Part shown: positions 17,454-41,155 of the stretch, one piece after another
Position numbering within the stretch: the first letter of the stretch is position 1
Layout of the letters: each line of letters starts with the position of its first letter
Source: Eutreptiella sp. 'Long Island Sound 2002'
Lineage: Eukaryota > Protista > Euglenida
Direction: 5' to 3'
Length of the DNA: 64,000 bases
NCBI GenBank assembly: GCA_964036045.1
Contig: OZ038379.1
Location: 2,108,001-2,172,000 of the forward strand
Notes under the pieces: generated by a model
The model's input: the letters and a program-made list of their open reading frames with translations, nothing else
What the model was told of the DNA's origin: nothing
Database searches by the model: none
Made by a program: the position numbers and the translations under genes

Positions 17454-17931
17454 ATGACCCACATATTTGTGTGGCTAGTGTTATGCCTCATTCTTGATGT
17501 GCGGCCTGCTCCCACAGCAGACTTCTTGCCGACGGATCCCAAAGTGCGAAAGGTTGGCCGCTTCCAAGCACAGCCTGATGACTCCCTTCGGTTTGATCAT
17601 CCAGGGACAGAAATCCGCCTGTGGATTTCAGGGGCCACCCGTATTCACTTTGATCTGAGCCAGTATTTTCCCTCGCCGGCATGGAATGTCCAGCCACACT
17701 ACTTCGAGATGTTCGTGGATGGGGTCAAGATGATGGATGGGGCGGAGATCACGTATCATTCGACATCATCCGTAGGGCAAAGTGAGAGCACCTCCTTCAC
17801 ATACACGGTCCTGGGCTTGTCCGGGGCGGCCTCGCAGACCGTCGTCTTCTACAAATCTTCCGAAGCGCAATGGAATGAGGAGTCTGTGGGCACGAATTAC
17901 ATGACAATGGAGCTGATACGGTTGTTTCCAG
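17454..17931 (+). CDS. Giant receptor, exon 1: signal peptide + CE2 N-terminal domain
   Basis: MTHIFVWLVLCLILDVRPA is a hydrophobic leader. VGRF..FDHPGTEI..VDG..YKSSEA matches the CE2 N-terminal pattern. Donor CCAG|GTTGGC is in phase 1. Confidence 0.8.
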
Positions 17932-19565
17932 GTTGGCCCCCCTCCGCTTTCCAAGAGGTCAGGATCATGCTGGTTATTTCAAAACCTGACATCATGGCCT
18001 CCGCTTTCCAAGGGCCTTGGTGGTGGGTTAGGGTAGTGACCGCTGATAAAGCGACGTGCCATCGCCTGAGTGGTGAAATCAAGAGGCATTCGACACAGAC
18101 ACAGCCGAGGGAGACAGCGGATGGAACAGTCTGGTTAAACTTGAGTGGTTTAGTGTACTGATCACGGTCCCCACCAGACAAGAAGGCCTGGAGGTTTTAG
18201 AAACAGGTGTTTCTCTGAGTGTTGCTGCCCTGTGTCAGATGCTCTGACCTGCTGTGTGTCAGCATTCCTGGGCCTGGGGGCAGTCCATGAACCTGTTGTG
18301 CACCTTATGTTGGGGGGGGGATGATGCAAATGCGTAACCCCCCCCCCCCTTTGCGAGAGCAACACCCTTGTCAGAGCAACAGTAGGTGTTGTTTCCGCAA
18401 CTTTTGGAACCGTGGAATTTGGCGGTTCCATTTTCTGGTGCTGCATTAAGATCACGTTTTTTCGGTGATTTGAGGCTGGGGATGGTGTTTTAGGGATATT
18501 GGTTGCTGCCCTGCCACCCATTTTCACCCCTTCTTGTCCTTTGGAGGTGGAAATTGGGGAACCACCTGACGACTACTACATTCATGACGCAATAGTCACC
18601 TCTTGTGTTTTCTCACGGCGTGCACAAACAACGCCCTTGTCAGAGCAACAAGAGGTGTCGTTTCGGTCAAATTTTGGAACTTTAGTGATGCTCTCGCAAG
18701 GGGGGGGGGGTAATTTTGCATAATTTTGCATACGGGGCTTTGGGCATAATTTGCACAATTTTGCCCAACTGTGCAACCACGAATCTGGCGTTCGCCCCAT
18801 GTGTTGGCCCTTTGTTTGCTGTTGTGTGTGTTCACTTTTGCTGCAGCTGTTTGCCCTTTCATCAATGCATAAAATTTTGAAGCCACTGGTTGTCACCCAA
18901 CCACCATCAGATGAGCTTGACGATGATGACATTCATGAGTTTGATGGTGGTGACAGTGGGTAGCCGCACAGTATTGGACCGCGGCCATTGCGTTGCGTCA
19001 TACTTCTGAGCCCAGGGTGTCGTGCCTTGCTCTGCCTCTTCACTTGCATCATTTTGCATAGTTTTGCATAATTTTCCATGCACCGATACCCCCCCCCCTT
19101 TGATTATGTGTGTGCCTGTGGGGTACCCCAGCAGGCTTGTGCTCAGTGTGGCGTGCACCCTACCTTGGGGGGGGGGGGGGGGTCGAGGTACCTATGGTCT
19201 TTTAGGCCAATTTTGACGAGCCAATTTTCTTCCTGCGCTTTGTGCTGATCGCCTCTTGTGCACACGTGCATTAGCACAGGCTTCCTCCGGGGGGTCAGAG
19301 GCAAAAAAACAAGTTTGTGTACCTGAAATCGGCCTCCAATTTCGGGCTCCATTGATGAATCTTAAGTTTTTCCTGAGGACGACTTTGCTGATGTAGGTGG
19401 GCGGGTGGGTCGGCTGGGGGTTGGCCAGGGCCCCAAACGCCCGGGCTACTAAGCACAACCCTGTGACCCAGTCCGGGCAGCTCTCCATCCCGTGACCCCT
19501 GGGACCCCCACGGCTCCGGGACTCCCCGCCGTTCCATCCCACTGCCGCCCTCCGCCTCTCCATAG
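17932..19565 (+). other. GT-AG intron, 1634 bp
   Basis: GT at 17932; pyrimidine tract and CATAG ending at 19565. Splicing gives FPG-SAILLDPPAPPTRRIEFIGD, a continuous CE2/SGNH sequence in frame with ORF 19682-41155. Confidence 0.8.
18338..18710. mobile_element. MITE-like element, 373 bp, with poly-C/poly-G TIRs and TAA duplication
   Basis: C12-TTTGCGAGAGCA at the left end and TGCTCTCGCAA-G11 at the right end, with TAA at 18335-18337 and 18711-18713. Confidence 0.7.
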
Positions 19566-22500
19566 GGTCTGCCATCCTGCTGGACCCTCCGGCCCCACCG
19601 ACCAGGCGCATTGAGTTCATCGGGGACGCCACCACCGCGGGCTTCTGCAACCTCTGCCACCTCCAGCCCACGTTAAGCGGCGTGGCCGCTCAGAGCCACT
19701 TCGACGCCTGGCCCAATCACGTGTGCCAGTTCCTCGGCGCCGAATGCCACACCGCCGCCTGGAGCGGCTACGGGCTCCTGCGGAATCACACGATGCGGGA
19801 CGTGTTCTATCGTGGCGTGGCCTCGGTCACGGACGGCTCCGAGCCGTGGGATTTCACCCGATGGACCCCCGATGTGCTGGTGGCCAACCTCGGCACAAGT
19901 GACGAGCTCGAGAAGGGGCCCGAGGCATTCCGCACCGCCTTCAAGGCGGCCTATCAAGACTTCATCCTCAACGTCTCCGCTCTCTACCCCGGTGCCACCT
20001 TCTTCGTGGCCTGCGGCCCGGTGTCCGACGCGTACTGCCCGGAGGTCCAGGAGGTGGTCGCGGAGGTGACTGCGACCGGCACCGCGGCGCATTTCCTGGA
20101 CCACCGGGGCCTTCTGGCGCGGCCGTGCTGCGGGTACCCGAGCGTCGAGGACGGGGCCCGGATGGCTGCGCACGCGGCCGCGCAGATCGCCGCGACCGTC
20201 GGGTGGAGTGGGTACAGACCGGCCCGGCAGTGCCCCGTCGGGTCCGTGTTCGCGGCCGGCCAGCCCTACGGTGCCCACGCCGCCGCGATGGCCTTCGACG
20301 GCAGCAAGACCACGAAGTGGTTGGATGACACCGGGGGCGGGACGTCCTGGATCGGGATCACGTTCCCGACCCCCGTCCTCGTCAATGAGTACACGCTGAG
20401 CAGCGCGGACGACGTGGCGCGCGACCCCAAGATCTGGAAGGTCTACGGAGACGGGGTTGAGCTCCATGCGATCGGATGGTTCACGTTCTCCTCGCGGTAT
20501 GAGCCCGTCACCTGGGCCCTCAGCATTACCGGGGCGTACTCGACGTACCGGCTGGCGATCGCTGCGGCCTACGACGATGGCAGTGTGCACGCTCTGGCGG
20601 AGTTCCGTCTTCACTGCACGGAGGCCGGACTCGAACCGGCGCTCATTGGGACCGTTTCGGCCGCGGGCGACAACGGTCCTTTGGAGAGCAGGCACATGGC
20701 CTTTGACGGGCTGCTCAGCACGGCTTGGCGCCATGACACCACAGGGGCCACTGGTGAGGCGGGAACCTGGATCCAAGTGGCCTACCCTTTCCCCGTGACA
20801 GTCACCACGTACTCCATCAGTGCCGTCGCCGATTCCGCGGAGCACGACCCCAGAGCGTGGGACCTGCTGGGAAATGGGGGCGTGATCGACTCCCGCACGG
20901 ACGTCACGTTCAATAGGTCTCACACTCAAACTTTTGCAATCGCGGGCCCCGGCGCGTACTCGACGTACCGGCTGCACGTTTGGAATGCCACGGACGGCGG
21001 CACCATTTATGCGCTGTCGGAGTGGACATTTGGGTTTGCGACGACAACTCCGTCTGCCACAGCAACCGAAGTACCCACTTCAACCCCCATGCCCACATCC
21101 ACCCCATCCAAGTCACCAACCCCCTTGGACGGACCTGCAGGCGCCTCAGAAACCTCAACTAACACGCCGACACCCACTGCATCCGTAACACAGTCTCCTA
21201 CCGGCACAACATCTGAGAGTCCCTCGATTCCATCACCCACCGCATCCCCAACCCCATCGCCATCTACATCCACAACGTCATCGGCATCGGTAACGGCCTC
21301 ATGGGCACCCACGTCATCACCATCTGCCACCGCATCTGCCACCCCATCGGCATCCGCATCAGCATCGGCGTCGGGAAGTGTATCGGTGTCACCAAGTGCC
21401 TCGCCGTCTGCATCTCGATCCCAGACCCCATCACCAAGCCAATCCTCCACGCCATCTGTGACGCCACCCTCCACTCCGTCACCCACCACGTCCCCAACCC
21501 CATCGCCATCTACATCCACAACGTCATCGGCATCGATCACGGCTTCATGGACACCCACGTCATCTTCATCTGCCACCAAGACCGCTACAACAAGCACGAC
21601 GCCCACGCCATCAGCCACGCCAACCTCCACGTCCAGTATTTCTGGCACCACTTCCCCGACACCAACTGCATCTCCATCCACCACCGCATCTGCCACTCCA
21701 TCGGCATCGGCATCAGCATCGGCGTCGGGAAGTGTATCGGTGTCACCAAGTGCCTCGCCGTCTGCATCTGGATCCCAGACCCCATCACCAAGCCAATCCT
21801 CCACGCCATCTGTGACGCCACCCTCCACTCCGTCACCCACCACGTCCCCAACCCCATCGCCATCTACATCCACAACGTCATCGGCATCGGTCACGGCTTC
21901 ATGGACACCCACGTCATCTCCATCTGCCACCAAGACCGCTACAACAAGCACGACGCCCACGCCATCACCCACACCAACCTCCACGTCCAGTATTTCTGGC
22001 ACCACTTCCCCGACACCAACTGCATCTCCATCCACCACCGCATCTGCCACTCCATCGGCATCCGCATCAGCATCGGCGTCGGGAAGTGTATCGGTGTCAC
22101 CAAGTGCCTCGCCGTCTGCATCTGCATCCCAGACCCCATCACCAAGCCAATCCTCCACGCCATCCGTGACGCCACCCTCCACACCATCACCCACCACGTC
22201 CCCAACCCCATCGCCATCTACATCCACAACGTCATCGGCATCGATCACGGCTTCATGGACACCCACGTCATCTCCATCTGCCACCAAGACCGCTACAACA
22301 AGCACGACGCCCACGCCATCACCCACACCAACCTCCACGTCCAGTATTTCTGGCACCACTTCCCCGACACCAACTGCATCTCCATCCACCACTACATCTG
22401 CCAGCCCATCGGCATCAGCATCAGCATCGGCGTCGGGAAGTGTATCGGTGTCACCAAGTGCCTCGCCGTCTGCATCTGCATCCCAGACCCCATCACCAAG

Positions 22501-25500
22501 CCAATCCTCCACGCCATCCGTGACGCCACCCTCCACACCATCACCCACCACGTCCCCAACCCCATCGCCATCTACATCCACAACGTCATCGGCATCGGTC
22601 ACGGCTTCATGGACACCCACGTCATCTTCATCTGCCACCAAGACCGCTACAACAAGCACGACGCCCACGCCATCACCCACGCCAACCTCCACGTCCAGTA
22701 TTTCTGGCACCACTTCCCCGACACCAACTGCATCTCCATCCACCACCGCATCTGCCACTCCATCGGCATCGGCATCAGCATCGGCGTCGGGAAGTGTATC
22801 GGTGTCACCAAGTGCCTCGCCGTCTGCATCTGGATCCCAGACCCCATCACCAAGCCAATCCTCCACGCCATCTGTGACGCCACCCTCCACACCATCACCC
22901 AGCCCATCCCCAACCCCATCGCCATCTACATCCACAACGTCATCGGCATCGGTCACGGCTTCATGGACACCCACGTCATCTCCATCTGCCACCAAGACCG
23001 CTACAACAAGCACGACGCCCACGCCATCACCCACGCCAACCTCCACGTCCAGTATTTCTGGCACCACTTCCCCGACACCAACTGCATCTCCATCCACCAC
23101 CGCATCTGCCACTCCATCGGCATCGGCATCAGCATCGGCGTCGGGAAGTGTATCGGTGTCACCAAGTGCCTCGCCGTCTGCATCTGGATCCCAGACCCCA
23201 TCACCAAGCCAATCCTCCACGCCATCTGTGACGCCACCCTCCACACCATCACCCACCACGTCCCCAACCCCATCGCCATCTACATCCACAACGTCATCGG
23301 CATCGGTCACGGCTTCATGGACACCCACGTCATCTTCATCTGCCACCAAGACCGCTACAACAAGCACGACGCCCACGCCATCACCCACGCCAACCTCCAC
23401 GTCCAGTATTTCTGGCACCACTTCCCCGACACCAACTGCATCTCCATCCACCACCGCATCTGCCACCCCATCGGCATCGGCTTCAGCATCGGCGTCGGGA
23501 AGTGTATCGGTGTCACCAAGTGCCTCGCCGTCTGCATCTCGATCCCAGACCCCATCACCAAGCCAATCCTCCACGCCATCTGTGACGCCACCCTCCACAC
23601 CATCACCCACCCCATCCCCAACCCCATCGCCATCTACATCCACAACGTCATCGGCATCGGTCACGGCTTCATGGACACCCACGTCATCTCCATCTGCCAC
23701 CAAGACCGCTACAGCAAGCACGACGCCCACGCCATCACCCACACCAACCTCCACGTCCAGTATTTCTGGCACCACTTCCCCGACACCAACTGCATCTCCA
23801 TCCACCACCGCATCTGCCACTCCATCGGCATCGGCATCAGCATCGGCGTCGGGAAGTGTATCGGTGTCACCAAGTGCCTCGCCGTCTGCATCTGGATCCC
23901 AGACCCCATCACCAAGCCAATCCTCCACGCCATCTGTGACGCCACCCTCCACACCATCACCCACCCCATCCCCAACCCCATCGCCATCTACATCCACAAC
24001 GTCATCGGCATCGGTCACGGCTTCATGGACACCCACGTCATCTCCATCTGCCACCAAGACCGCTACAACAAGCACGACGCCCACGCCATCACCCACGCCA
24101 ACCTCCACGTCCAGTATTTCTGGCACCACTTCCCCGACACCAACTGCATCTCCATCCACCACCGCATCTGCCACTCCATCGGCATCGGCATCAGCATCGG
24201 CGTCGGGAAGTGTATCGGTGTCACCAAGTGCCTCGCCGTCTGCATCTGGATCCCAGACCCCATCACCAAGCCAATCCTCCACGCCATCTGTGACGCCACC
24301 CTCCACACCATCACCCACCACGTCCCCAACCCCATCGCCATCTACATCCACAGCGTCATCGGCATCGGTCACGGCTTCATGGACACCCACGTCATCTCCA
24401 TCTGCCACCAAGACCGCTACAACAAGCACGATGCCCACGCCATCACCCACACCAACCTCCACGTCCAGTATTTCTGGCACCACTTCCCCGACACCAACTG
24501 CATCTCCATCCACCACCGCATCTGCCACTCCATCGGCATCGGCATCAGCATCGGCGTCGGGAAGTGTATCGGTGTCACCAAGTGCCTCGCCGTCTGCATC
24601 TGGATCCCAGACCCCATCACCAAGCCAATCCTCCACGCCATCTGTGACGCCACCCTCCACACCATCACCCACCCCATCCCCAACCCCATCGCCATCTACA
24701 TCCACAACGTCATCGGCATCAGTCACGGCTTCATGGACACCCACGTCATCTCCATCTGCCACCAAGACCGCTACAACAAGCACGACGCCCACGCCATCAC
24801 CCACGCCAACCTCCACGTCCAGTATTTCTGGCACCACTTCCCCAACACCAACTGCATCTCCATCCACCACCGCATCTGCCACTCCATCGGCATCGGCATC
24901 AGCATCGGCGTCGGGAAGTGTATCGGTGTCACCAAGTGCCTCGCCGTCTGCATCTGGATCCCAGACCCCATCACCAAGCCAATCCTCCACGCCATCCGTG
25001 ACGCCACCCTCCACACCATCACCCACCACGTCCCCAACCCCATCGCCATCTACATCCACAACGTCATCGGCATCGGTCACGGCTTCATGGACACCCACGT
25101 CATCTTCATCTGCCACCAAGACCGCTACAGCAAGCACGACGCCCACGCCATCACCCACGCCAACCTCCACGTCCAGTATTTCTGGCACCACTTCCCCGAC
25201 ACCAACTGCATCTCCATCCACCACTAAATCTGCCACTCCATCGGCATCAGCATCAGCATCGGCGTCGGGAAGTGTATCGGTGTCACCAAGTGCCTCGCCG
25301 TCTGCATCTGGATCCCAGACCCCATCACCAAGCCAATCCTCCACGCCATCTGTGACGCCACCCTCCACACCATCACCCACCACGTCCCCAACCCCATCGC
25401 CATCTACATCCACAACGTCATCGGCATCGATCACGGCTTCATGGACACCCACGTCATCTCCACCTGCCACCAAGACCGCTACAACAAGCACGACGCCCAC

Positions 25501-28500
25501 GCCATCAGCCACGCCAACCTCCACGTCCAGTATTTCTGGCACCACTTCACCGACCCCAACTGCATCTCCATCCACCACTACATCTGCCACTCCATCGGCA
25601 TCGGCATCAGCATCGGCGTCGGGAAGTGTATCGGTGTCACCAAGTGCCTCGCCGTCTGCATCTGGATCCCAGACCCCATCACCAAGCCAATCCTCCACGC
25701 CATCCGTGGGGCCGCCCTCCACTTCGTCACCCACCACGTCCCCAACCCCATCGCCATCTACATCCACAACGTCATCGACATCGGTCACGGCTTCATGGAC
25801 ACCCACGTCATCTTCATCTGCCACCAAGACCGCTACAACAAGCACGACGCCCACGCCATCAGCCACGCCAACCTCCACGTCCAGTATTTCTGGCACCACT
25901 TCCCCGACACCAACTGCATCTCCATCCACCACTACATCTGCCACCCCATCGGCATCGGCATCAGCATCGGCGTCGGGAAGTGTATCGGTGTCACCAAGTG
26001 CCTCGCCGTCTGCATCTGGATCCCAGACCCCATCACCAAGCCAATCCTCCACGCCATCCGTGACGCCACCCTCCACACCATCACCCACCACGTCCCCAAC
26101 CCCATCGCCATCTACATCCACAACGTCATCGGCATCGGTCACGGCTTCATGGACACCCACGTCATCTTCATCTGCCACCAAGACCGCTACAACAAGCACG
26201 ACGCCCACGCCATCACCCACGCCAACCTCCACGTCCAGTATTTCTGGCACCACTTCCCCGACCCCAACTGCATCTCCATCCACCGCCGCATCTGGATCCC
26301 AGACCCCATCACCAAGCCAATCCTCCACGCCATCCGTGACGCCACCCTCCACACCATCACCCACCACGTCCCCAACCCCATCGCCATCTACATCCACAAC
26401 GTCATCGGCATCGGTCACGGCTTCATGGACACCCACGTCATCTTCATCTGCCACCAAGACCGCTACAACAAGCACGACGCCCACGCCATCACCCACGCCA
26501 ACCTCCACGTCCAGTATTTCTGGCACCACTTCCCCGACACCAACTGCATCTCCATCCACCACCGCATCTGCCACTCCATCGGCATCGGCTTCAGCATCGG
26601 CGTCGGGAAGTGTATCGGTGTCACCAAGTGCCTCGCCGTCTGCATCTGGATCCCAGACCCCATCACCAAGCCAATCCTCCACGCCATCCGTGACGCCACC
26701 CTCCACACCATCACCCACCACGTCCCCAACCCCATCGCCATCTACATCCACAACGTCATCGGCATCGGTCACGGCTTCATGGACACCCACGTCATCTTCA
26801 TCTGCCACCAAGACCGCTACAGCAAGCACGACGCCCACGCCATCACCCACACCAACCTCCACGTCCAGTATTTCTGGCACCACTTCCCCGACACCAACTG
26901 CATCTCCATCCACCACCGCATCTGCCACTCCATCGGCATCGGCATCAGCATCGGCGTCGGGAAGTGTATCGGTGTCACCAAGTGCCTCGCCGTCTGCATC
27001 TGGATCCCAGACCCCATCACCAAGCCAATCCTCCACGCCATCTGTGACGCCACCCTCCACACCATCACCCACCACGTCCCCAACCCCATCGCCATCTACA
27101 TCCACAACGTCATCGGCATCGGTCACGGCTTCATGGACACCCACGTCATCTCCATCTGCCACCAAGACCGCTACAACAAGCACGACGCCCACGCCATCAC
27201 CCACGCCAACCTCCACGTCCAGTATTTCTGGCACCACTTCCCCGACACCAACTGCATCTCCATCCACCACTACATCTGCCACTCCATCGGCATCAGCATC
27301 AGCATCGGCGTCGGGAAGTGTATCGGTGTCACCAAGTGCCTCGCCGTCTGCATCTGGATCCCAGACCCCATCACCAAGCCAATCCTCCACGCCATCTGTG
27401 ACGCCACCCTCCACACCATCACCCAGCCCATCCCCAACCCCATCGCCATCTACATCCACGACGTCATCGACATCGGTCACGGCTTCATGGACACCCACGT
27501 CATCTTCATCTGCCACCAAGACCGCTACAACAAGCACGACGCCCACGCCATCACCCACGCCAACCTCCACGTCCAGTATTTCTGGCACCACTTCCCCGAC
27601 ACCAACTGCATCTCCATCCACCACCGCATCTGCCACTCCATCGGCATCGGCATCAGCATCGGCGTCGGGAAGTGTATCGGTGTCACCAAGTGCCTCGCCG
27701 TCTGCATCTGGATCCCAGACCCCATCACCAAGCCAATCCTCCACGCCATCTGTGACGCCACCCTCCACACCATCACCCACCACGTCCCCAACCCCATCGC
27801 CATCTACATCCACAACGTCATCGGCATCGGTCACGGCTTCATGGACACCCACGTCATCTTCATCTGCCACCAAGACCGCTACAACAAGCACGACGCCCAC
27901 GCCATCACCCACGCCAACCTCCACGTCCAGTATTTCTGGCACCACTTCCCCGACACCAACTGCATCTCCATCCACCACCGCATCTGCCACTCCATCGGCA
28001 TCGGCATCAGCATCGGCGTCGGGAAGTGTATCGGTGTCACCAAGTGCCTCGCCGTCTGCATCTGGATCCCAGACCCCATCACCAAGCCAATCCTCCACGC
28101 CATCTGTGACGCCACCCTCCACTCCATCACCCACCACGTCCCCAACCCCATCGCCATCTACATCCACGACGTCATCGGCATCGGTCACGGCTTCATGGAC
28201 ACCCACGTCATCTCCATCTGCCACCAAGACCGCTACAACAAGCACGACGCCCACGCCATCACCCACGCCAACCTCCACGTCCAGTATTTCTGGCACCACT
28301 TCCCCGACCCCAACTGCATCTCCATCCACCACCGCATCTGCCACTCCATCGGCATCGGCATCAGCATCGGCGTCGGGAAGTGTATCGGTGTCACCAAGTG
28401 CCTCGCCGTCTGCATCTGGATCCCAGACCCCATCACCAAGCCAATCCTCCACGCCATCTGTGACGCCACCCTCCACACCGTCACCCACCGCGTCCCCAAC

Positions 28501-31500
28501 CCCATCGCCATCTACATCCACGACGTCATCGGCATCGGTCACGGCTTCATGGACACCCACGTCATCTTCATCTGCCACCAAGACCGCTACAACAAGCACG
28601 ACGCCCACGCCATCACCCACGCCAACCTCCACGTCCAGTATTTCTGGCACCACTTCCCCGACACCAACTGCATCTCCATCCACCACCGCATCTGCCACTC
28701 CATCGGGATCGGCATCAGCATCGGCGTCGGGAAGTGTATCGGTGTCACCAAGTGCCTCGCCGTCTGCATCTGGATCCCAGACCCCATCACCAAGCCAATC
28801 CTCCACGCCATCCGTGACGCCACCCTCCACTCCATCACCCAGCCCATCCCCAACCCCATCGCCATCTACATCCACAACGTCATCGGCATCAGTCACGGCC
28901 TCATGGACACCCACGTCATCTCCATCTGCCACCAAGACCGCTACAACAAGCACGACGCCCACGCCATCACCCACACCAACCTCCACGTCCAGTATTTCTG
29001 GCACCACTTCCCCGACACCAATTGCATCTCCATCCACCACCGCATCTGCCACTCCATCGGCATCAGCATCAGCATCGGCGTCGGGAAGTGTATCAGTGTC
29101 ACCAAGTGCCTCGCCATCCGCATCTGGATCCCAGGCCCCATCACCAAGCCAATCCTCCACGCCATCCGTGACGCCACCCTCCACTCCATCACCCACCCCA
29201 TCCCCAACCCCATCGCCATCTACATCCACAACGTCATCGACATCGGTCACGGCCTCATGGACACCCACGTCATCTCCATCTGCCACCAAGACCGCTACAA
29301 CAAGCACGACGCCCACGCAATCATCCACTCCAACCTCCACGTCCATTCTGAGCCTGCCCCCCACCCCAACTTGCACTCCCAGTTCCATGCCAACTCTGAT
29401 GTTCACCTACCTCCCAACGCCAGCGCCCTCACCTTCATTTGTGCTGTCATCCACATTAAGCCCAAGTACTTACGCATTTGTATCTCTCACCCGACCTGTG
29501 GCCCCCACCGAATATGCATCCCTGTGGCAGTCCCTTTCGCCAACTTCATCATTGTCACCATCGCAGACGATCACAGATCTCCGGAAACCCATTTCCTCTG
29601 CATTTGGTACCCAATTTGGAACAGCAACCACCAGGTCATCCACCAGCCTAAGCCCAACGGCCCCTCCAACCTCGCCACCCACCACGCCCCCCGACCCACT
29701 TCCTGCTGCACCTCCAAATGCCGCGCCGTCATGGAAACTGAAAATCGACCCCGTCCCGCAGCCCGTCCCCGCCCACGAACCCCTCCACCTCAGCGCCACG
29801 TTGACCGGACATGGGGGCCACCTCCTGACCTGTCGCAGCCCGACGTCGTCGGACTGGGCCGTCCACTGGGCGTCCTCCGCGCCAGCCCTGGCCGCGTCCC
29901 TCAACGCCTCCCGCACTCTGACCGCCGTCCTCCCCGCGCTTCCCGCCCCCTCCCTCACCATCCGCGTCACCGCCACGCACCCCGCCTCCGGGGCCGTCCT
30001 GCGCGACGCCGTCCGGCTGCAGGTCAACTACGCCCCCACGGGCCCCCCGGAGCCGGCGCTGACCCTCGACGCCCCCGCCGGGGTCCTCCTCGCCGGGCGG
30101 ACCCGCATCACCCTGTCGACCGCGGCATCGGCCTGGGCCCCCTTCCTGCCGGGGGGGCGGCCCCTGGAATACCTCTTCGCGGTTCAGCACCCGGACGGCG
30201 CCCTGACGACCCTCCCCGGCCACCCGGCCTTCACCCCGGCCCCGACCGTCTCCCTCGCGGCCCCATGGCTGCCGACGGCCTCCCCGGACCCGCAGCGCCC
30301 CCGCTTCGTGTTGTACGTGCGCGACGCCTTCGGGGCGCAGGCGGGGCCCTTTGCCGCGGCCCGGCCCGTCACGGTGCGGGCCGCGGCCCCGGCGTGCCCT
30401 TGGGACTGCGCGGCCCCGGGGACCCTGATGGAGGCCGCCGCCTGCCTCGCGTGCGCCGGCCCTCCCTCCGTCGCGGCCCTCAATCAGCTCATCGCCGCCC
30501 ACGTCCGCCAGCGGTCGCGGGCGCTCCCCCCGCACGCCCTCGCGTGGCTGCTGCGCGACGTCGCCTTCCTCACGCGGCTCTACCGACGCCCCGACCCCTC
30601 CCCCGTGGCCGCCCGCCTGCACTTGGCCGGCCTCCTCCTCAACGCCACGCGGCCCCACCTCCACGTGCCCCCCCTCCCGGCCCTCCTCCACGCCGCCCTC
30701 GCCGCCGTGCTGTACGCCCCCGCCCCCGCCGTGCCCTTCGCCGCCGTCCCCGCGGTGCTGCGCGTGCTGCACGCCGCCCGCGCCGCCCTGTGGGCCCCCT
30801 GGGGCGTTCGCTGCGCCCCGGCCCCCCTCCGTTTGCAGGGCCGGTGGCTGAGGATGTACGCGGCGCAGCTGCACAGCGCCGCCCTGCCCGCGGCCCTCGC
30901 CTCGGGCCCGGTGGCCGTGCACTTGCCCCCTGCTCTTGGGGCGGCGCTTGCCGTGCCGTTGTCGGGGGGTGGCCCGGTGCACGCCATCCTCGATGTCAGT
31001 CCCGTCGCAGACGGGCTGTTGGCGGAGCTGGTCACCCTCAGTTTCTTGGATCGCGCGAGCGGGAGGGAGCTGCCGGTGCAGGGGCTTGCAGAGCCCCTCA
31101 CGATTGTGTGGCCGGTGGCCAACTGGAGCGCCCTCCGGCTCCCGGTGACGGACTGGTATGAGTGCGTCTGGTGGGACGCGGGCAGCTGGAGCACCACGGG
31201 GACGTGGCTCGTGGTGCCTTCCGGAACCGAACCCGGTACCCTCGCGTGCAACACCACGCACCTCTCCGCATTTTCTATTCGGCCCATCGTGCGTGTTCTG
31301 GCGGTGTCCGGGCCAGGCTGGCTCCGCCCCCCAACCCTCCTCGACTGCCCCCTCCACTTCCCGGCGCTCACCGTGTCCGGCATCCACTTCGGCCCCTCCG
31401 GTGCCGCGGCTGCGCTGCGCGCCCCGGACGGCACGGCGGAGTGGACCCTCCGCAACGTCACCCACCAGCCCGGCCGGGAGGACGCCCGGCTCCTGTGTGC

Positions 31501-34500
31501 CCCCCCTGCGCCCCCTTTGCCACCCAGCCTCGCCGCGCGTTGGGTTGACCTCGAGGTCACCACGCGCTACGGCACCCGCCACCGCCTGCCGCGCGCGGTC
31601 CTGTTCAGCGCCCCGGCGGTCGCACGCGCCCTCGTCCGCCTGCCTTCCGTCGCCGCGTGTGCCGCTGCCACGCGCACGGCCCTCATCGCGTGCCCGCGGA
31701 CCGGCACGGCCTTTGGCGTCGTTGGGGAGGGGCTGCTGGGGTACGGCCCCACGTCGATCACCGTGGGCCCGTACCCGTGCCCCACGGTCCTCCCCATCAA
31801 CGGCTCCTACGTCGAGTGCCGAGGCCTCAGCGGCGAAGGGTTGGGGCACCCGGTCACCGTCGCGGTGGGCCCGGCCGCCGCGGACGGCCCCCTCACGCTC
31901 TCCTTCCGGAGCCCCTGCGCTTCGACGCGGGGCTTCTGGACGGGCCCCGCCTGCGACCGCTGCCACCCAGATTACCACGGCCCTGACTGCGCGGCGCTGT
32001 GCCCAGGGGCCCCGGGGCACGTGTGCACGGGGCATGGGGTGTGCGAGCGCCGCGGGTGCCGCTGCGCCGCGGACGGCACCCACGGGTACTGGGACGGCAT
32101 CGCCTGCGCGCGCTGCCGGGCGGGGTACGCGGGCCGAGGGTGCCGCGTGGCGTGCCCGGCGGCGGGCAACCGGACGTGCGCGGGGCACGGGGTGTGCGAC
32201 GAGGGGCTGGCGGGCACGGGGGCGTGCCGCTGTCTGGCGCCGTGGCAGGGCCCGGCGTGCGACGTGCTGTGCAGCGCGGCGGAGGCGCTCGTGCCATGCG
32301 CCGGCCACGGGGTCTGTGGCCGCGGCGCCGGGGCTTTGGGGGGCGGGACGTGTGCGTGCGCTGCGGACCCGGTGGCCGGGCATTGGGCCGGGCCTGCGTG
32401 CCTTTGGTGTGCGGAGGGCTGGGCTGGCCCCAACTGCACTGCCATGTGCCCGGGGGCGCCTGAGGGGCCGGCGTGCTCGGGACGGGGGCAGTGCGCGTGG
32501 AGGGGCGCGGCCGTGGCGTGCGAGTGCCGGGAGGGGTACGTGGGGGCCGCCTGCGCCGACCCCTGCCCTGTGGACTCTGCAGGGCGCGTCTGCGGTGGGC
32601 ACGGGGAGTGCTACGCCGACGGTCCCCGGGGCGCGCGGTGCCGGTGCGACGCCTCCACCGCCGCTGGGCACTGGGCGGGCTCCGCGTGCGGCGTCTGCGC
32701 GGCGGGCTACAGTGGGGCCGACTGCCGCATCCCGTGCCCCGGCTCCCGCAACGGGACGGTCTGCGGTGGGGCGGGGCGCTGTACGCAGGGGGTGTGCCGG
32801 TGCGACGCCGGGGCGTGCGGGGCCGCGTGCGAGGCCGCCGGCGCGGACTGCCGCCGGTGCGCCCCCGGCACGTGGGGCGCGGCGTGCGAGCACACGTGCC
32901 CCGGCGGGGCGCTGCCCCCCTGCAACGGCCACGGCTGGTGCCTGGACGGGATCATGGGCTCCGGGGAGTGCATCTGCGCCGCCGGCTACACCGGCCCTGA
33001 CTGTGCTCTGGCATGCCCCGCCGCATGTTCCGGGCACGGGATCTGCCGGCCCCCCGGGCACTGCGTGTGCGCGGCCGGGTACGCGGGCGCCGCGTGCGCG
33101 ACCGCCTGCCCCCGGTCTGCGATGGGACTCGTGTGCGGCGGGCCGTCCCGCGGGGCGTGCGCCCCCGGCGCCGGGACCTGCACGTGCGCGGGGGGGTATT
33201 CGGGGCCCGCCTGCGATGTGGCATGTGCCGGTGCCGAGCCCTGCACTGGGCACGGGGCGTGCTCGGCGGAGACCTCCGGCTGCGCCTGCACGGGGCACTG
33301 GGCGGGGCTGGCCTGCGACCTCTGTGCCGGCGGGTGGTACGGGCCCGACTGCGGGCGCCGGTGCCACGAGGGGGCGAGCGTTGCGCGGCTGTGCGTCTGC
33401 CGCCCCGGCTGGGCCGGCGAGGGGTGCGCCGTGCCCTGCCCGGAGGCCGTCGGCCGCGTGTGCGCCGGCCATGGCACCTGCAACGACACCCACGCGGGGG
33501 ACGGCGCCTGTGCCTGTGCGGCGGACTGGCGGGGGCCGGCGTGCGCGGTCCCCTGCCCCGGGGTGCTGACACACGGGCGCGCGTGCGGCGGACACGGGGC
33601 CTGCCTGGGGAATGCCACTTGCCAGTGCGCGACTGGGGCCACACAGGGCTACTGGGCTGGGCCGGCGTGCCTCGAGTGTGCGGAGGGCTACACAGGGCCC
33701 GGGTGCGCACAGGCGTGCCCGACGGGGAAGGCCGGGGCGGTGTGCAGTGGCCATGGGACATGCAGCCCCGAGGCGGAGGGCGGGTGCGTGTGCCACGCCA
33801 GCCCTACGGACGGGTACTGGGACGCGGCCCAGGGGTGTGCGGAGTGCCTGCCGGAGTACTGGGGCCCGCAGTGCCGGGCCCGGTGCCCCGGGGCGACCTG
33901 CGCGGTGTGCTCGGGGCATGGCCAGTGCGACGCTGGCACGCGCGGCACGGGGGCGTGCGCATGCGACCCCCAGTGGGCCGGACCGGCGTGTGCGGAGTGC
34001 GCGCCGGGCCGGTTCGGCCCGGCCTGTGCTGCCAGGTGCCCCTGGGGTGGGGGCGGTGCCGCGGCGGCGGTGTGCAGTGGGCACGGGCTGTGCCACGATG
34101 GACGCCATGGGACAGGGCGCTGCAACTGCACGGCGGCGGCAGTGGAGGGGCACTGGGTGGGGGCCGACTGCAGCGAGTGTCAGGCCGGGTACTGGGGGAC
34201 TGGCTGCCGGGGGTCGTGTCCGCGGGGCAGCTCTGGCGCTGTGTGCTCCGGCCGCGGCCGGTGCCGCGACGGCGTTGCGGGCGACGGCTGGTGCGCATGC
34301 GACCGCGGCTACGGCGGCGCGGCGTGCGGGCAGGCCTGCCCGGTCCACGCCAACGCCATCTGCAACGGCGTGGGCACATGCGACCCTGTCCGTCTCATGT
34401 GCAACTGCAGCGGTGCAACGGGGCACTGGCACGGGGTCGCGTGCGAGTCTTGCGTGGCGGGTTGGGTGGGCCCCGGCTGTGACATTGCCTGCCCCCGAAG

Positions 34501-37500
34501 CGGGGCCGCGCAGGCGGTGTGTTCAGGGGCGGGCATCTGCCTCATGGCTGGCCGCGATGGTGCCGCGGGGGCGCGCTGCGAGTGCTACGCCGGGTACGTG
34601 GGGCCCATGTGCGCGCGGCAGTGCCCCGGTGGCGCGCGGCTCCCGTGCCACGGGCACGGCCAGTGCGACCCCGCGGACGGACGCTGCGCCTGCGACGGAT
34701 CCGAGGCGCTGGGGCACTGGGCAGGGCCCGCGTGCGCGGAGTGCGCGGTCGGGTTCTCGGGCCCGCGCTGCCGCTCACGGTGTCCTGCGGGGGCGGGTGC
34801 GGAGCCGTGCTCGGGGTACCGCTGCGTGGATGGGGTGTGTGACTGCCGCGCGGGCGGGCCCGGCGTCTGCGGGCACGCCTGCCAAATCACGGGGGTTGAG
34901 GCGTGCGCGGCCCTCGCCTGCCAGACCGGCTGGTCGAAGGCGTGGTGCTCCACACGCTGCGCCACGGGGCCTGGCGCGGCGGTCTGCAGCGGGCACGGCC
35001 TGTGTCCGGAGGCGGTGTACGGGGACGGGCTGTGCCACTGTGACCCCGGGTACGCCGGTGAGAGCTGCAGCGTGGAGTGCCCAGGGGGGGCGGCGGCGCC
35101 GTGCTCCGGCTTGGGCGTGTGCGACCCCGCCACGGGGGCCTGCACGTGCTACCCGGGCTTTGCCGGGCCGGACTGCAGCGCGCCGTGCCCCTTCTCCGAG
35201 GGCCGGGTTTGCAGCGGGCATGGGCGCTGCAACGACACGGCCGCGGGGGACGGGACATGCGCGTGCGACCTGGGGTTTGCGGGGCAGGGCTGCGCGGTGC
35301 TGTGCCCCGGCGCCACTCCGGAGGACCCCCGCGGCTGCAGTGGGCACGGGCGGTGCGTCCAGGCCAGTGCGAAGTGCGTGTGCGTCGGTGACGCGGCCCG
35401 GGGGCACTGGGCTGGCACGGCGTGCGACGCGTGCGCGGACGGGTACTTCGGGCCGGGCTGTGACCGGGAGTGCGTGCACGGCCGCACCGCGGGGGCCGTC
35501 TGCGTCTGTCTGCCGGGGTACGGCACCGCCAACTGCAGCGCCGTGTGCCCGGGGCCCGCGGAGGCCCGCTGCCACGGGCACGGGGTGTGCCGGGACGGCC
35601 ACGCCGCGGACGGGACCTGCGCGTGCGACGCGCGGTGGTACACCGCCGACTGCTCGGTGCACTGCGACCCGGCCGCCTGCTTCAGGGGCCCGGCGTACCC
35701 GGAGCCCCACGCGCAGTGCCACCCCCGCACGGGGCAGTGCGAGTGCCTCCGGGACGATCGGGGGGGGCACTGGGCCGGGCCGGCGTGCACCGAGTGCCTC
35801 GTGGGGTACTGGGGCCTGCTCTGCGCCAAGCCCTGCCCCTGCCACGGCCACGGCGGGTGCGGGCGGCTCGACGGCGTGTGCGAGTGCTTCCGGGACGAGG
35901 GGCGGGGGTTCTGGGGCGGGCCGGAGTGCGGGGCGTGCGCCGAGGGGTACCTGGAGCCGGCCTGCAAGGCCCGGAATGTGGGGATCCCCCGGCCGCGCGA
36001 GGCGCTCCTGATGGCGGCCGGGGTGCGTGCGGTGGTGGCGGACCCGGCGTGGCGCCTGCTGTACACCGGGGGCACGCCGCTGCTGGTGCTCCACAGCGAC
36101 GACAGCCGCCCCGCCGCGGCGCTGCCGCTCAACGGGACTGTGCGGTCCGGGTTCGTCACCGCGGACTCGGTGGTGCTGATGGTGGTGGGGCCCGACGAGA
36201 TGGACGTGCGCGTGCACGCGATCAGCCGTGGGCCTGAGCCGACGGTGTTGAGCACGATCCCAGTGGAGCGGCCCCGGGAGCGGCCCATGGGGGCCCTCGC
36301 CGCTGCGCCGGACGCTCCCGTGGCCGCGGCCGGCGGGACCATGGAGACGTTCGAGCTGCACTCCCTCGTGCACGTTTTCCTGTTCCGCAGCGGCGTCGCG
36401 CGCGTCACCGTGTGGGCCCGCGACGGAGCCCTCGTCGACCGCCACGTGCTCACCGCCGCCGAGTTGCAGCTCGACACCATCCGCAGCCTCACGCTGCACG
36501 GGGCCGCAGGGGGGGCGCCGGGCCTCCTCCTCGCGGGCTCCCACGGCAATATGTGGCAGCTCACGCTGGTCCCACTGCCGCTGCCCGGCGCCCCCGTCCC
36601 CCTCCGGGCCTGGCTGTCCCTTCCGGTGTGCGCCCCGCCAACCCCGTGCCTGAGTGCCACTGCGGCAGCCCCCAGCCCCACGGGGGGCCTTTACGTGGCC
36701 CTCGAGCAGGCTCGCGGTTTGGTCGTCGCCAAGGTGGACCCCGCGACGCGCCGTGTGGACCGCAGCGTGGCGGTGGAGGGGGTGGGGCCCGGGGCCGGGG
36801 TGACGGGACTGGCGGTGGATCCCGTGACTGGGTCGCTGTTCGTGGCGGTGCGCGCGCGCGCGCTGCCCTCGGTGGTCTACAAGCTCAACGGGACGACACT
36901 GCTGCTGTACGGACTGCTGCGGCTGCGCTCCCGTGGGGGGCACGACGAGGCGGTGCACAGCCTGCACCCCGACGCCCCCCTGCGGCGGCTGTACGCCCTC
37001 GGCAGCCTCAATGCCCAGCCCCTCCTCATCACGCTTCTCATGTACGCCGTGTCGAGCGTCGACCCCCTGCTGGCGGATGCGCAGGGCGGGGCGCGGGTGC
37101 ATGTCACCGGGGAGGGCTTCGCGGACCTCGGCGATACCGCGTGCGTGTTTGCCCACGGGGCGGAGGCCCCCGCCACGGTGCTCTCCCCGCGCGCCGCGGC
37201 GTGCTACGCGCCTGCGACGAACGCGACTTCGGACGACTGCCAGGCGGAGGCGGTGGAGCTGCGGCTTGCGCCGGGGCTGCCAACCGACAACCGTGTGGGC
37301 CTGCGCCGGACCGCGACCCCATCCATCCTCGGCGTGTCGCCGGCGCGCGGGTACCACAGCGAGGCCCAGTGGGTGCGGGTCGAGGGCTACGGGTTCCTCC
37401 GGTCGCCTCAGATGCGGTGCCGGTTTGCGGCCGCACAGGGGCCCTCCGCCACGGTCCACGGCCCGGGGCATGTGCAGTACCTCTCGAGCACCGAGATCCG

Positions 37501-40500
37501 GTGCCGGCAGCCCGTCGTGGAGGGGCCGTTCCCGCTCCCCAGCGTTTTGGAGGTGTCGATGGATGGCCAGACCTTCACCAAAAGCCTCATCGCGTACGCC
37601 ATCGTGGGTCCCCCAGTGGCCCTGGAGGCCAGCCGCCCCGCCCTCACTGTAAAGGCCGCGTCGGCCACGGCCGTCCGCAACGTCACGGTCTACTCCCGCG
37701 ATCGCTGGGGCCACCGCGTCCTGGGGTACGACCGGGGGCGGGACCCCGCCCGCTGCGAGGTCCGCGCGCGCGCGAGCGGCGCCGTGCTGCCGGTTACCGG
37801 GGACATGGCGCGGTTTCAGGACGGGCGGGTCGCTTTCCCTGGGCTCACGCTGCGGCGGCCGAAGGTGGGGCAGTATGAGCTGCGCGTGACCTCCGCGCTG
37901 GGGAGCACGGAGCCCCCTGTGACGGTCTACGTCGTGGAAGGGGACCCCGTGGCGCTGCACGTTCTGCGGGAGCCATCCCCCGAGACCGACAGCGCGGGGC
38001 CGCTGGTGGACCAGCCGGTGTTGGAGCTGCGGGATGGGGCTGCAAATCCGGTGCTGAGCCCCGCGGCCCGAGCCCTGTCCGTGCACGCCCACGTGCGACC
38101 GGCCCCGGCCCCGGGGGCGCCGGCAGAGGCATTCTTCGTCGAGGGGGCGTTCCGGTTCCGGGGCGTCGCGGTCACCGCGGCGCACGGCGTCACGTACCGG
38201 CTGCTCTTCGCGCTGGCGACTGGCGGGTTGGCGCTGCCCAACGTCACGTCGCGCGCCATCCGGGCCAAGCCGTGCCCTGGGGACCGCTTCTTCATCGCGG
38301 GGCAGACCGCGTGCCGCGCGTGCCCCGACGGGGCCGTCTGCAACGGGACCGACGTATTGGTGACGCAGCCCAACCGCTGGCGGTCGGCCGGGACGCTGCA
38401 CTTCCTCCCCTGCGCCGATGTCGTGGGGGCCGCCGGCCCCCCCTGCCTCGCGGGGGTCCCCCACGCCGCCTGCTCCGCCGGGTTCACCGGCCCCCTCTGC
38501 GCCGTCTGCCGGCCGGGCCACGCCGGGGCGGCGTGCGCGGCGTGCCCCTCGGCGCCGGCCCTCGCCGTGATCGCGTCCCTCCTCGGCTTCAACGCGGTCC
38601 TCGCGGTGGTCACCCTCCAGGCGTTCCGCGCCGACCCGGCCGCGCGGAAGCACGCGGTCTCGGTCGTGTTCAAGATCGCGGTCACCTACGCCCAGACCCT
38701 CAGCATCCTCCACCCGGTCCTCCCCCAGCCCGCGGTCCGGCGCGCGTTCCGGGCGTTCGAGGGGCCCGCGAGCTTCCAGCTGCCGGCCACCAGCATCGCG
38801 TGCCTGTTCCCGGCCGTCGACACCTACGCGCTGTTCTACTGCAACATGGGGGTCCCGGTGCTGGGGGTGGCCCTGGCGCTGCTCGTGCTCTGGTACGACC
38901 GCTCCGTCGGCTGCGTGCACTCCCTGCGGCTCGCGGCCATGCACCCGGCCCAGCGCGCCAAGGCCCGGGGCCGGAGCTTCACGCGCGGCCGCGGGGTCCT
39001 CAGCATCCTCCTGCTGGCGCTCAGCGTGGCCCTGTACTTCCTCTACCCCTCCCTCATGCTGCAGAACATGCGGGTCCAGAAGTGCACCCGGTACGACTTC
39101 GGCGCGCCGGTCGCCGCCGGGCCGCAGCCGGGGCAGTGGTACAACGTGCGCCGGTTCCTTGCCACGGACCACTCTGTGGACTGCGACGGCCCCGGGTACC
39201 GGCGCCTGCGGGCGGTGAGCGGCCTCTTCATGGTCGGCTACGGGCTGGGGGTGCCCGCCGCCTTCTTCGCCGGGGGGCACTTCCTCCGCAAGGTCCGGGG
39301 GGGCCTGGAGCAGGAGACGTTCGCGTTCATAGTGGCGGGGTTCCGGCGGGAGTGCCGGTACTGGGAGGTCCTCCACATGGCCCGCAAGTCCCTCGTCATC
39401 GCCGCCGTGACGTTCGTGGCGGACGAGCGGCTGCGGATCTACTGCGCGATGTGGACGCTCGCGGCGTGCCTGGCGCTGCAGCACCGGTACCAGCCCTTTG
39501 AGGCGGCCGTGGCGAATCGGTTGGAGGCGGGGTCGCTCTGGGTGCTCACCATCACCCTCAACGCGAGTCTGCTGGCGCTCACGCCGTACCTGGCGGCCCG
39601 CGCGGACGGCGTCCTGGACGTCGCCCTCGCCGTGGGCGTCCTCGTCCTGCAGGGCGCGCTGCTGCTGGGGTTCGCCCTGGCGGTCTCCGTGGAACTCTGG
39701 GGGCTTCTGGTCGGGAAATGGAGGGCGTGGGCGGCCCAGAGGGATGCCGCCGCGCGCCGACCGGCGGCCACCCGCCCCCACAGCGCCGCCGCGCCGCCAG
39801 CGGTCGGTGCGGGAGTCGAACCGGCGCCACCCTCCGATGACGACGTCCCCAGACGCACGTCCACGAGCGACTTCGAGGCGCTCAACGTGCAGCTCCACGG
39901 GGCACAGTTCATGCGGACTTCCGCCGCTCGGGCCCTGAGGCTTTCAGAGATCGAGCTTGCGGGGGACCCGGCCAAGCGGCCCCTCCCCGATGCCGAACCC
40001 GGTGCCCCCGAACTGGCCCCCGGCACCTCCGCCGGCCCGTCGGATGCGTCCCATGCGCACGCGGAGCCGTCTCCGTCGAAGGGTCGACGGGGGTCCGGAG
40101 GTGGGGCCCCGAGTTATATCCGTGACTCCGCCCTGCCTTCGGGGCTGTCCCCAGTGGCCCCGGTCGGGGGGGCATGGGCAGGGGGAGGGGCCGGCCCAGT
40201 CTCCGGGGCAGACGCAGCCGCGAGCCCCGGCACAACGGACGCCCGCCGCCGCTGGAGTGCCCGGCCCGCCCCCTCCGAAGCGGCCCCCCGGGCCTCCAGC
40301 CCCGCCTCCAACTCGAGCACCAGCTCCTCCTGGTCCTCCGGGGGGGTCACGTGCTTCGAGGTCGCGCAGCTGCAGGACCTGCTGCCGGCCCTCGGGTGGT
40401 CCTGGAGCCCCCGGGCCTCTCCCTCCCGCTCGTGGGGCCGCAGGTCCTGGGCGCCACCCCTGTCATCCCGGCGCCCCGTGGACGTCGAGGGCCCGGGCCC

Positions 40501-41155
40501 CGCGGCGGCGGCGGGAGGCGGCCGGGGGGTCCCCCTGCACTTCTCCTCTCTGCCGGCATTCGACCGGCCCTGGGCCGGGGCCGGGCCGAGCCCCCCGGGC
40601 GCGCAGCCACCCGCAATGGCCGCCGCAGGCGCCGCCCGGCGGGCGGTCGCTGGCCCGCCGCCCTCGCCGCACGCGCGTTCCTGTCCGTCGTCCAGCCGGT
40701 CCGATTCGCCCCCATCGGCCCCGTGGGACTCGCCCGCGGCGTCGGAGGCGTCGCCGGTGCTGCCGCACTGCCCGGGAGGCGACCCGTGGGCCGGGCGCGT
40801 GCTGCCCCGCCCCCCGCTCGGCCCGGTCGTCCCATGGCTCCCCTTGGGGTCCAGTGCCCGGACCGGGGGGGCAGGCACCCCCTGCACCGGCAGCGCCGTG
40901 TTGCAGTCGGGCGCCTCCCCCGGGGGCCGCGCGTCTGGCGGCGGGGCCGCGGCGGTCGAGAGTGGCCGGTGGGCGCGGGACATGGCGGAGGCAAGCGGCA
41001 CCGCGGCGCTGTCGGGGTTTCCTGCTGCACTGCGGGAGTCCCTCCCCAGCCCCAGCGCGTGCGGCGTCGCCCGGCCCCGGTCCTCGCCACCCGGCCATCC
41101 GCTCTTGCGGTCCCCTCCCGTACCCCCTCTCTCTTCGTCCTCTCACTCTCTGTGA
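19566..41155 (+). CDS. Giant receptor, exon 2 (21,590 bp; total protein ~7355 aa): pseudo-SGNH, 2 discoidin, mucin, REJ-like/GPS, TIG, laminin-EGF array, Ig-like, ~9 TM, disordered tail
   Basis: Uninterrupted ORF with strong GC3 bias and ordered, recognisable domain motifs; ends at TGA 41153-41155. Confidence 0.92.
19605..20205 (+). other. SGNH/GDSL (CE2-like) domain with catalytic residues substituted
   Basis: RRIEFIGDATTAGF (block I), AWSGYG (block II), NLGTSD (block III), CCGYPSVED (block V). Confidence 0.85.
20230..21030 (+). other. Two discoidin/F5-8 type C (CBM32-like) domains
   Basis: AFDGSKTTKW..WIGITF..YTLSSA..RDPKIW and AFDGLLSTAW..WIQVAY..YSISA..HDPRAW. Confidence 0.8.
21230..29340 (+). 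repeat. 354-bp (118-aa) Ser/Thr/Pro mucin-like coding repeat, ~23 near-identical copies
   Basis: Period of 354 read from recurring positions (21585, 21939, 22647, 23001 and onward). One unit near 26285 is 78 bp shorter (in frame), and the first unit is also truncated. Confidence 0.95.
31160..31280 (+). other. GPS (GAIN) autoproteolysis motif
   Basis: CVWWD..W..G..CNTTHLSAF, with the H-L|S triad at 31259-31267. Confidence 0.8.
31910..35970 (+). other. Array of roughly 30 laminin-type EGF-like modules
   Basis: Repeated CPG..CSGHGxC..CxC..GxWxG..C..C..G.xG..C. Confidence 0.9.
38560..39715 (+). other. Multi-pass (~9 TM) membrane domain, TRP-like/Flc-like protist family
   Basis: Nine hydrophobic segments, with KIAVTYAQ and FIVAGFRRECRYWEVLHMARKSL motifs. 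Confidence 0.7.

Follow-up and report, generated by a model that had tools for sequence, protein, structure and literature searches.

A CE2 esterase fold, very probably catalytically dead, at the tip of a predicted giant surface protein of Eutreptiella

Introduction

Is a CE2 esterase domain at the tip of a giant surface protein still an enzyme, and if not, what might it have become? The question is raised by a gene in a stretch of 64,000 nucleotides (nt) from the euglenid Eutreptiella sp. 'Long Island Sound 2002' (assembly GCA_964036045.1, contig OZ038379.1, positions 2,108,001 to 2,172,000 of the forward strand), which we refer to as the window and whose numbering is used below. The gene encodes a predicted protein of ~7,350 residues, of which the first ~375 form the CE2 head. 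An earlier note on this sequence had recognised the CE2/SGNH fold and the replacement of three catalytic residues. It had proposed that three coordinated substitutions converted a module of possibly bacterial origin into a lectin that binds glycans through its former active-site cleft, as the CE2 domain of Clostridium thermocellum Cel5C (CtCE2) does. We have followed up these proposals with sequence searches, structure models and a comparison with other CE2 genes of the same genome.

Loss of the catalytic residues

The SGNH domain was aligned with HMMER to CtCE2 (PDB entries 2WAO and 2WAB), for which the chain index plus 481 gives the numbering of the published study (PMC2661963). In this alignment the nucleophile, the oxyanion Asn and the catalytic base are replaced in the window by Ala, Ser and Tyr, respectively (Table 1). 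The motifs GDA (GCC at 19628), GTSD (19898) and CGYPS (TAC at 20135) given in the earlier note were thereby borne out, both by direct reading of the codons and by the CtCE2 alignment. All three changed codons are located in a single frame that has no stop from 19496 until 41153-41155 and comprises 7,195 codons (21.6 kb) when counted from the start of exon 2. The residues beside the changed positions, G, D, G, T, D and P, are kept.

To judge how often these positions vary, we drew column counts from 155 of the 2,678 relatives retrieved in a full HMMER search of 1.84 billion representative proteins. Ser was present in 127 of 130 aligned sequences, Asn in 145 of 147 and His in 127 of 130, which corresponds to ~98% for each position. 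The triple loss in the window is far from chance and is confirmed. For CtCE2 it has been reported that either S612A or H791A alone abolishes activity, and the Ser-His dyad was described as invariant across CE2 in 2009 (PMC2661963). The three residues that identify a CE2 domain as an enzyme, namely the block I Ser, the oxyanion Asn and the block V His, are all missing from the window domain, and with the changes Ser to Ala, Asn to Ser and His to Tyr no ester hydrolysis by the Ser-His mechanism of the family would be expected. We conclude that the gene very probably encodes a catalytically dead but retained CE2 head on a giant surface protein.

Departures from the consensus were also observed elsewhere among the relatives. 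The only catalytic change in P0053 (Alexandrium monilatum A0A7S4UA24) is His to Tyr, and the only change in P0119, a metagenome protein, is Ser to Ala, while P0033 has Met for Asn. P0128 reads GGS/GLED/GFP and is another likely dead CE2. Two further exceptions among the 155 sequences are fragments that turned out to be exons of a paralogue described below. Judged from the alignment, single losses of catalytic residues elsewhere in the family are sporadic.

A complete two-domain CE2 fold

The two exons of the gene were used as separate queries in searches, folds and trees. Exon 1 matched Pfam CE2_N with 23.3 bits (E 7e-5), under the cut-off of 27.9, and the one-piece homologue P0001 with E 1e-9 in tblastn. 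Its AlphaFold2 (AF2) model was all-beta with a predicted local distance difference test score (pLDDT) of 88.4, and the best Foldseek match was the N-domain of CjCE2A (Cellvibrio CE2A; 2WAA, E 8e-7), with further CE2 structures and CBM35/CBM6 modules next in rank. For the SGNH domain, a phmmer search of the PDB yielded 2WAB (E 5.6e-15), 2WAO (1.5e-14) and 4XVH (8e-14). The AF2 model of this domain had a pLDDT of 82.8 and a predicted template modelling score (pTM) of 0.83, and its 11 best Foldseek matches were all CE2 chains, with query template modelling scores (TMq) of 0.74-0.81, ahead of other SGNH hydrolases.

Pfam Lipase_GDSL and Lipase_GDSL_2 gave no match at E<=1 in the first 215 residues of exon 2; those models lean on the lost motifs. 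Of the checks put forward in the earlier note, the Pfam comparison gave a sub-threshold match to CE2_N and none to Lipase_GDSL_2, and structure prediction placed both domains among CE2 folds. The family of the SGNH part was settled by the sequence search of the PDB and by the fold search. A CE2_N jelly-roll is followed by an SGNH alpha/beta domain, and the head is, according to the models, a complete two-domain CE2 fold.

Gene model and splicing

The gene is located on the + strand and is modelled with two exons, the first of which opens with a signal-peptide-like segment from the ATG at 17454. This segment begins MTHIFVWLVLCLIL and the predicted signal peptide covers residues ~1-21. The intron has its donor GT at 17932 and its acceptor AG at 19564-19565. 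In P0001, a protein of 371 amino acids (aa) for which Pfam CE2_N and Lipase_GDSL_2 both score above cut-off, residues 14-141 align to 17529-17906 in exon 1 and residues 153-370 to 19574-20206 in exon 2, and the 11 residues between these two stretches match the 11 residues modelled across the exon junction. By this colinearity, the predicted splice joining 17931 to 19566 holds.

A different splice that restores GDS, which the earlier note had named as a possible refutation, was looked for and ruled out. The GDA is located 60 nt inside exon 2, straight after the conserved strand RRIEFIG, and a tblastn-based comparison with homologues revealed no CE2-like frame in the intron (17932-19565), so no other splice can restore the Ser. 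Between the upstream stop at 19493-19495 and the SGNH domain there is no in-frame ATG.

The AG at 17445-17446, which follows a pyrimidine run, could be a candidate spliced-leader acceptor. Another in-frame ATG is present at 17304, 5' of the proposed start (stretch 17304-17453), and it would be removed if a spliced leader were added at this AG. The window is nuclear DNA. A 24-nt sequence that we take to be the Euglena spliced leader occurred in 3,309 exact copies in the 2.28-Gb assembly, compared with 0 for the reversed control. The small subunit (SSU) rRNA genes of the assembly are ~2.2 kb in size.

Within the intron, at 18298-19175, poly-G and poly-C runs enclose an inverted repeat (18340-18365 and 18685-18710, 92% complementary), direct repeats of 36 nt and groups of ATTTTGCATA units, which together are probably a small insertion of the hairpin type or resembling a miniature inverted-repeat transposable element (MITE).

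A paralogue with other residues at the same positions

We searched the assembly with the SGNH domain and with CE2_N and identified one multi-exon paralogue with the same head and stalk, located at C22:24745330-24772000 and hereafter called the C22 paralogue. It consists of an exon for the signal peptide and CE2_N, three exons for the SGNH domain, two discoidin domains, a stalk rich in Ser, Thr and Pro, and a further large open reading frame (ORF) for an ectodomain. These parts are 41-55% identical to those of the window gene, with 46-55% over the three SGNH exons, which were used as separate sequences, and 41-50% for the discoidins. The first intron is a few codons upstream of the position of the window intron, and the membrane module of this paralogue was not located.

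The CE2 domain of the C22 paralogue is likewise predicted to be dead, with Thr, Asp and Arg in the motifs GDT, GTDD and GRPS, and these two genes were the only ones seen with a dead CE2 head. The same substitutions, which the earlier note had suggested looking for in paralogues, were hence not recovered: the C22 head has other residues at these positions and the stand-alone copies of the genome are intact. The codons are GCC, AGT and TAC in the window and ACC, GAT and CGC in C22, each a single substitution away from Ser (TCC), Asn (AAT) or His (CAC). Going from AGT to GAT takes two substitutions, and so does going from TAC to CGC; each path has two possible intermediates, one of which encodes the canonical residue. 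Most simply, the receptor still had its Asn and His at the time of duplication, and the two copies lost them separately afterwards. Separate loss is expected once the activity has become dispensable and speaks against the coordinated building of a new site, and the earlier idea of three coordinated substitutions is not supported by the comparison with C22.

The family-invariant positions lost in both dead copies are exactly the Ser, the neighbouring Ile, the Asn and the His. Both copies also lack the NCCGG loop that is found behind block II in close Cys-rich relatives, at the site of the CtCE2 cleft residue Tyr-665, and in both, block I is followed by a CH(L/V)QPTL loop, which is otherwise seldom seen in the family. 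The shared deletion and the shared loop point to a common, remodelled cleft.

Constraint on the head

To quantify the divergence between the window gene and the C22 paralogue, we calculated nonsynonymous (dN) and synonymous (dS) substitution frequencies per exon. The dN values were 0.34-0.46 for the SGNH domain, 0.42 for CE2_N and 0.44-0.60 for the discoidins, and dN was lower than dS. In a quick IQ-TREE family tree of 74 rows, the end branch of the window domain was 0.51 as compared with a median of 0.53. This tree is largely unresolved, with 40 of the 71 inner branches open, and neither the origin of the head nor a bacterial donor can be judged from it. The structural residues of blocks I-III and V (G, D, G, G-T-x-D and P) are kept in both dead copies. 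The ORF is intact, the models are confident, a dead paralogue exists, dN is below dS and the branch length is ordinary, all of which indicates that the fold is retained after the catalytic loss and is not decaying.

Family context and origin

The three stand-alone CE2 genes of the same genome (Table 1) have single open frames with Ser and His intact and are apparently active. The host genome contains at least 5 CE2 copies, some of them with spliceosomal introns. All source-named relatives are protists, namely the diplonemid Diplonema japonicum EP01064 P012069 (P0009), another EukProt entry and the protein P0053 of the dinoflagellate Alexandrium monilatum mentioned above. The closest protist sequences and the C1 paralogue are 42-50% identical to the head, and the C24 and C6 copies are more distant. 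The cysteine motifs CNLC, ACGP..YC and CCG-x-PS are common to the protist relatives and the host copies, and the bacterial members of the alignment are without them.

The GC content at third codon positions (GC3) is 0.64 in exon 1 (17454-17930), 0.88 in exon 2 (19568-20212) and 0.91 deeper in the ORF. This step from exon 1 to exon 2 is also present in the C22 paralogue and is therefore a property of the gene and not a foreign signature. A recent bacterial transfer was rejected since the named relatives are protists and the GC3 step is shared with C22. The bacterial origin considered in the earlier note is accordingly unsupported as a recent event, given also the number of host copies and their introns, and any bacterial origin of the CE2 module would be ancient.

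The rest of the protein and its receptor family

The earlier note had placed the head at the tip of a receptor, far from the membrane and next to two discoidin domains, and this placement is supported here. In the predicted giant membrane protein the head is N-terminal, beside two discoidin domains and above a Ser/Thr/Pro stalk of ~2,900 residues (Table 1). The discoidin pair scored 24.6 bits with Pfam F5_F8_type_C, under the cut-off of 28.2, and matched PDB 7NSN in two stretches (E 1.6e-12). The two predicted domains are probably real in spite of their weak Pfam scores. The core of the stalk, 21315-29345, consists of ~22.7 copies of a 354-nt (118-aa) repeat with 97% identity according to Tandem Repeats Finder (TRF). 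Owing to this repeat, the other reading frames and the opposite strand also contain long ORFs that are spurious, such as the one at 21007-29406 (2,799 aa). In the remaining ectodomain, Pfam matches were obtained to EGF_TEN (1.3e-25), EGF_Teneurin (2.7e-23) and TIG (1.2e-6), and a cytoplasmic tail extends from the transmembrane module to the stop.

The membrane module (window 38165-39964) had 76 matches in the genome, such as C14:13743328, C24:13416228 and C3:173627307, and often formed the last part of an open frame of 3,700-8,200 aa. On the basis of these matches, the window gene is assigned to a large family of predicted giant receptors with varied ectodomains, and the host seems to have many such receptors with exchangeable ectodomains.

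Table 1. Predicted features of the window gene (window coordinates) and stand-alone CE2 genes elsewhere in the assembly
Feature	Position	Strand	Basis or remark
Exon 1, signal peptide and CE2_N jelly-roll domain	17454..17931	+	Pfam, tblastn, AF2, Foldseek
Intron, GT-AG, phase 1, 1,634 nt, with repeats between poly-G and poly-C runs	17932..19565	+	Sequence; colinear exon alignments to one-piece homologues
Exon 2	19566..41155	+	
SGNH (CE2 catalytic-type) domain, predicted dead	19566..20212	+	PDB phmmer, AF2, Foldseek
Block I GDATT, Ala (GCC 19628-19630; GAC-GCC 19625-19630) at nucleophile Ser-612	19622..19636	+	
Block II WSGYG, oxyanion Gly-658 kept; following loop shortened, NCCGG motif of relatives gone	19760..19774	+	
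Block III GTSD, Ser (AGT 19898-19900; ACA-AGT-GAC 19895-19903) at oxyanion Asn-705	19892..19903	+	
Block V CGYPS, Tyr (TAC 20135-20137; GGG-TAC-CCG 20132-20140) at catalytic base His-791	20129..20143	+	
Two discoidin (F5/8 type C, CBM32-like) domains, ~20225-20626 and 20627-21046	20225..21046	+	Pfam, PDB
Mucin-like stalk, ~80% Ser/Thr/Pro, ~2,900 residues	21044..29800 (end approximate)	+	TRF; composition in 200-residue windows
Remaining ectodomain: Cys-poor region, many teneurin-type EGF repeats, IPT/TIG	29801..38560	+	Pfam
Multi-pass transmembrane module (ORF residues ~6332-6716) with 5 or more hydrophobic helices	38561..39715	+	Kyte-Doolittle scan
Stand-alone CE2	C1:181083628-181084824		44% identical; GDS, GTND, GHP
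Stand-alone CE2	C24:33300760-33301992		35% identical; GDS, GTNR, GHP
Stand-alone CE2	C6:119027193-119028500		435-aa ORF, GDS

Discussion

The best explanation of the head is, in our view, that it serves as a non-catalytic module for ligand binding or adhesion, and we regard this as probable. Considering the CE2 ancestry and the two discoidin neighbours, from which a lectin role may be inferred, the ligand would most plausibly be a glycan. We envisage that the head was derived from the resident subfamily of protist-type Cys-rich CE2 esterases and was duplicated along with its receptor, giving rise to the C22 paralogue. Catalysis would have become dispensable, and the catalytic positions would then have decayed separately in the two copies, while the CE2 fold was kept under constraint. 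Together with the two discoidins it would form the distal head of a receptor-like protein, carried on a mucin-type stalk that is followed by EGF and TIG repeats and by the multi-pass membrane module.

Several observations weigh against a binding module under constraint. The searches made gave no sign of the window gene among transcripts or proteins, and neither a word search aimed at giant orthologues (residues 1-480 of the 7,195-aa frame) nor the top 150 of the full search turned up an orthologue. The dS values of 0.6-1.4 are near saturation, so that dN/dS is only a rough guide, and with two sequences only the apparent conservation of the fold could partly be slow decay. The former catalytic positions, A/S/Y in the window versus T/D/R in C22, differ between the paralogues and are thus not a conserved new site. 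Finally, the aromatic platform of CtCE2 is missing from the window, where a His of the shortened loop stands at the position of Tyr-665, a deletion covers Trp-746 and a Gly takes the place of Trp-790.

The last point bears directly on the possibility that the head is a true enzyme-derived lectin, in which the former cleft, with Ala for Ser, would hold a polysaccharide, possibly O-acetylated, without cleaving it. CtCE2 binds cello-oligosaccharides in its active-site cleft via Trp-746, Trp-790 and Tyr-665, and mutating any one of these abolishes binding, while S612A binds 8-fold tighter and H791A 20-fold more weakly (PMC2661963). The tighter binding of S612A favours such a lectin, as do the kept backbone positions of the oxyanion hole, the change of Asn to Ser, which retains a hydrogen-bond donor, the discoidin neighbours and the cleft-flanking loops that are conserved between the dead copies. 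However, all three platform aromatics are gone, the His that matters for binding is Tyr or Arg here, and the pocket residues differ between the paralogues, with the Asn to Asp change in C22 expected to repel a carbonyl. Moreover, cellulose binding was called unique to CtCE2 within CE2 (PMC2661963). What the precedent shows is glycan binding by a CE2 cleft; the residues responsible for it in CtCE2 are, by alignment, absent here. We consider a cleft lectin possible but doubtful, and the CtCE2-like binding mode proposed in the earlier note finds no support in the aligned residues.

The free drift of the catalytic positions between the paralogues and the absence of the known binding platform would also suit a structural relic, that is a CE2 fold kept as a stable cap or spacer or as an aid to folding and secretion, with any ligand binding left to the discoidins. 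The same membrane module carries many different ectodomains, so that heads are shuffled, which fits this alternative as well. Yet the CE2 domain is as conserved as the discoidins, the dead copies have loop features near the cleft in common, and the domain has been retained by two paralogues at ~50% identity, and so we likewise have more doubt than belief in a mere relic. By analogy with the dead cholinesterase domains of neuroligins, the head could instead be a module for protein-protein adhesion. The surface protein would then be tipped with an inactive hydrolase fold, and its downstream EGF and TIG repeats are typical of adhesion proteins. This seems improbable to us since no conserved surface is seen beyond two sequences, and CE2 ancestry and discoidins point to glycans.

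It is very improbable that the domain is still catalytic through non-canonical residues or that the locus is non-functional or mis-modelled. In the C22 copy the nucleophile is replaced by Thr, a residue that can take this role in other hydrolases; a dead locus would agree with the lack of transcript evidence in our searches. But the window copy has Ala and is without the His, and CtCE2 is inactive with either S612A or H791A (PMC2661963), while the 21.6-kb open frame and the colinear splice model are at odds with a dead locus.

Returning to the favoured binding module, a more daring version is that the dead CE2 domain and the double discoidin form a substrate-trapping reader of polysaccharides, possibly O-acetylated ones, that couples glycan sensing at the tip of the mucin stalk to the multi-pass membrane module. 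The large family of giant receptors with exchangeable ectodomains would then include a head type of this kind, and an SGNH/CE2 pseudo-esterase would for the first time be seen to act as a receptor lectin, which we think unlikely on present evidence.

Within a single genome, three stand-alone CE2 genes that are apparently active can be compared with two dead heads that lost their catalytic residues by different paths. With this natural comparison set, the question of what stays conserved after catalysis is lost becomes directly testable. The case also gives an initial clue to what the host's giant, mucin-stalked surface proteins might sense. The value of the case is limited in that function, expression and ligand of the head are all inferred. 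In literature searches we found no example of an SGNH/CE2 pseudo-enzyme or lectin, none on a receptor, and nothing specific on CE2 in Euglena.

Comparison with known systems

The reuse of a pseudo-enzyme as a binding module is a well-known theme, and what would be new here, as far as the literature searches showed, is an SGNH/CE2 case on a receptor. In the GH18 chitinase-like lectins (for example CHI3L1/YKL-40) and in neuroligins, which are cholinesterase-like adhesion molecules, a hydrolase fold has been kept, the catalytic residues have been lost and the protein has been put to extracellular use for binding. The window head resembles them in being an extracellular domain with a kept hydrolase fold and lost catalytic residues. 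These proteins have other folds and come from other lineages, and experiments have demonstrated that they bind, whereas the window head is known from sequence and models. CHI3L1 has been named a pseudo-enzyme (PMC13637049).

The protist-type Cys-rich CE2 esterases are closer, and their closest members share both domains and the cysteine motifs with the window head. These esterases occur as free proteins, 350-450 aa long, in which GDS, GTND and GHP are intact, except for the His-to-Tyr change in P0053, and they have kept the NCCGG loop, unlike both receptor heads, which have lost it. CtCE2 (PDB 2WAO, and 2WAB for the S612A mutant) is the best match of the window in sequence and fold (E 6e-15, TMq 0.81) and has the same architecture of a jelly-roll followed by an SGNH domain. 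However, CtCE2 belongs to a cellulosomal enzyme and is active as an esterase, with Ser-612 and His-791 as its dyad, whereas the window domain is predicted to be dead and is part of a putative eukaryotic membrane receptor. The window domain carries naturally the Ser-to-Ala change that was engineered in CtCE2 S612A.

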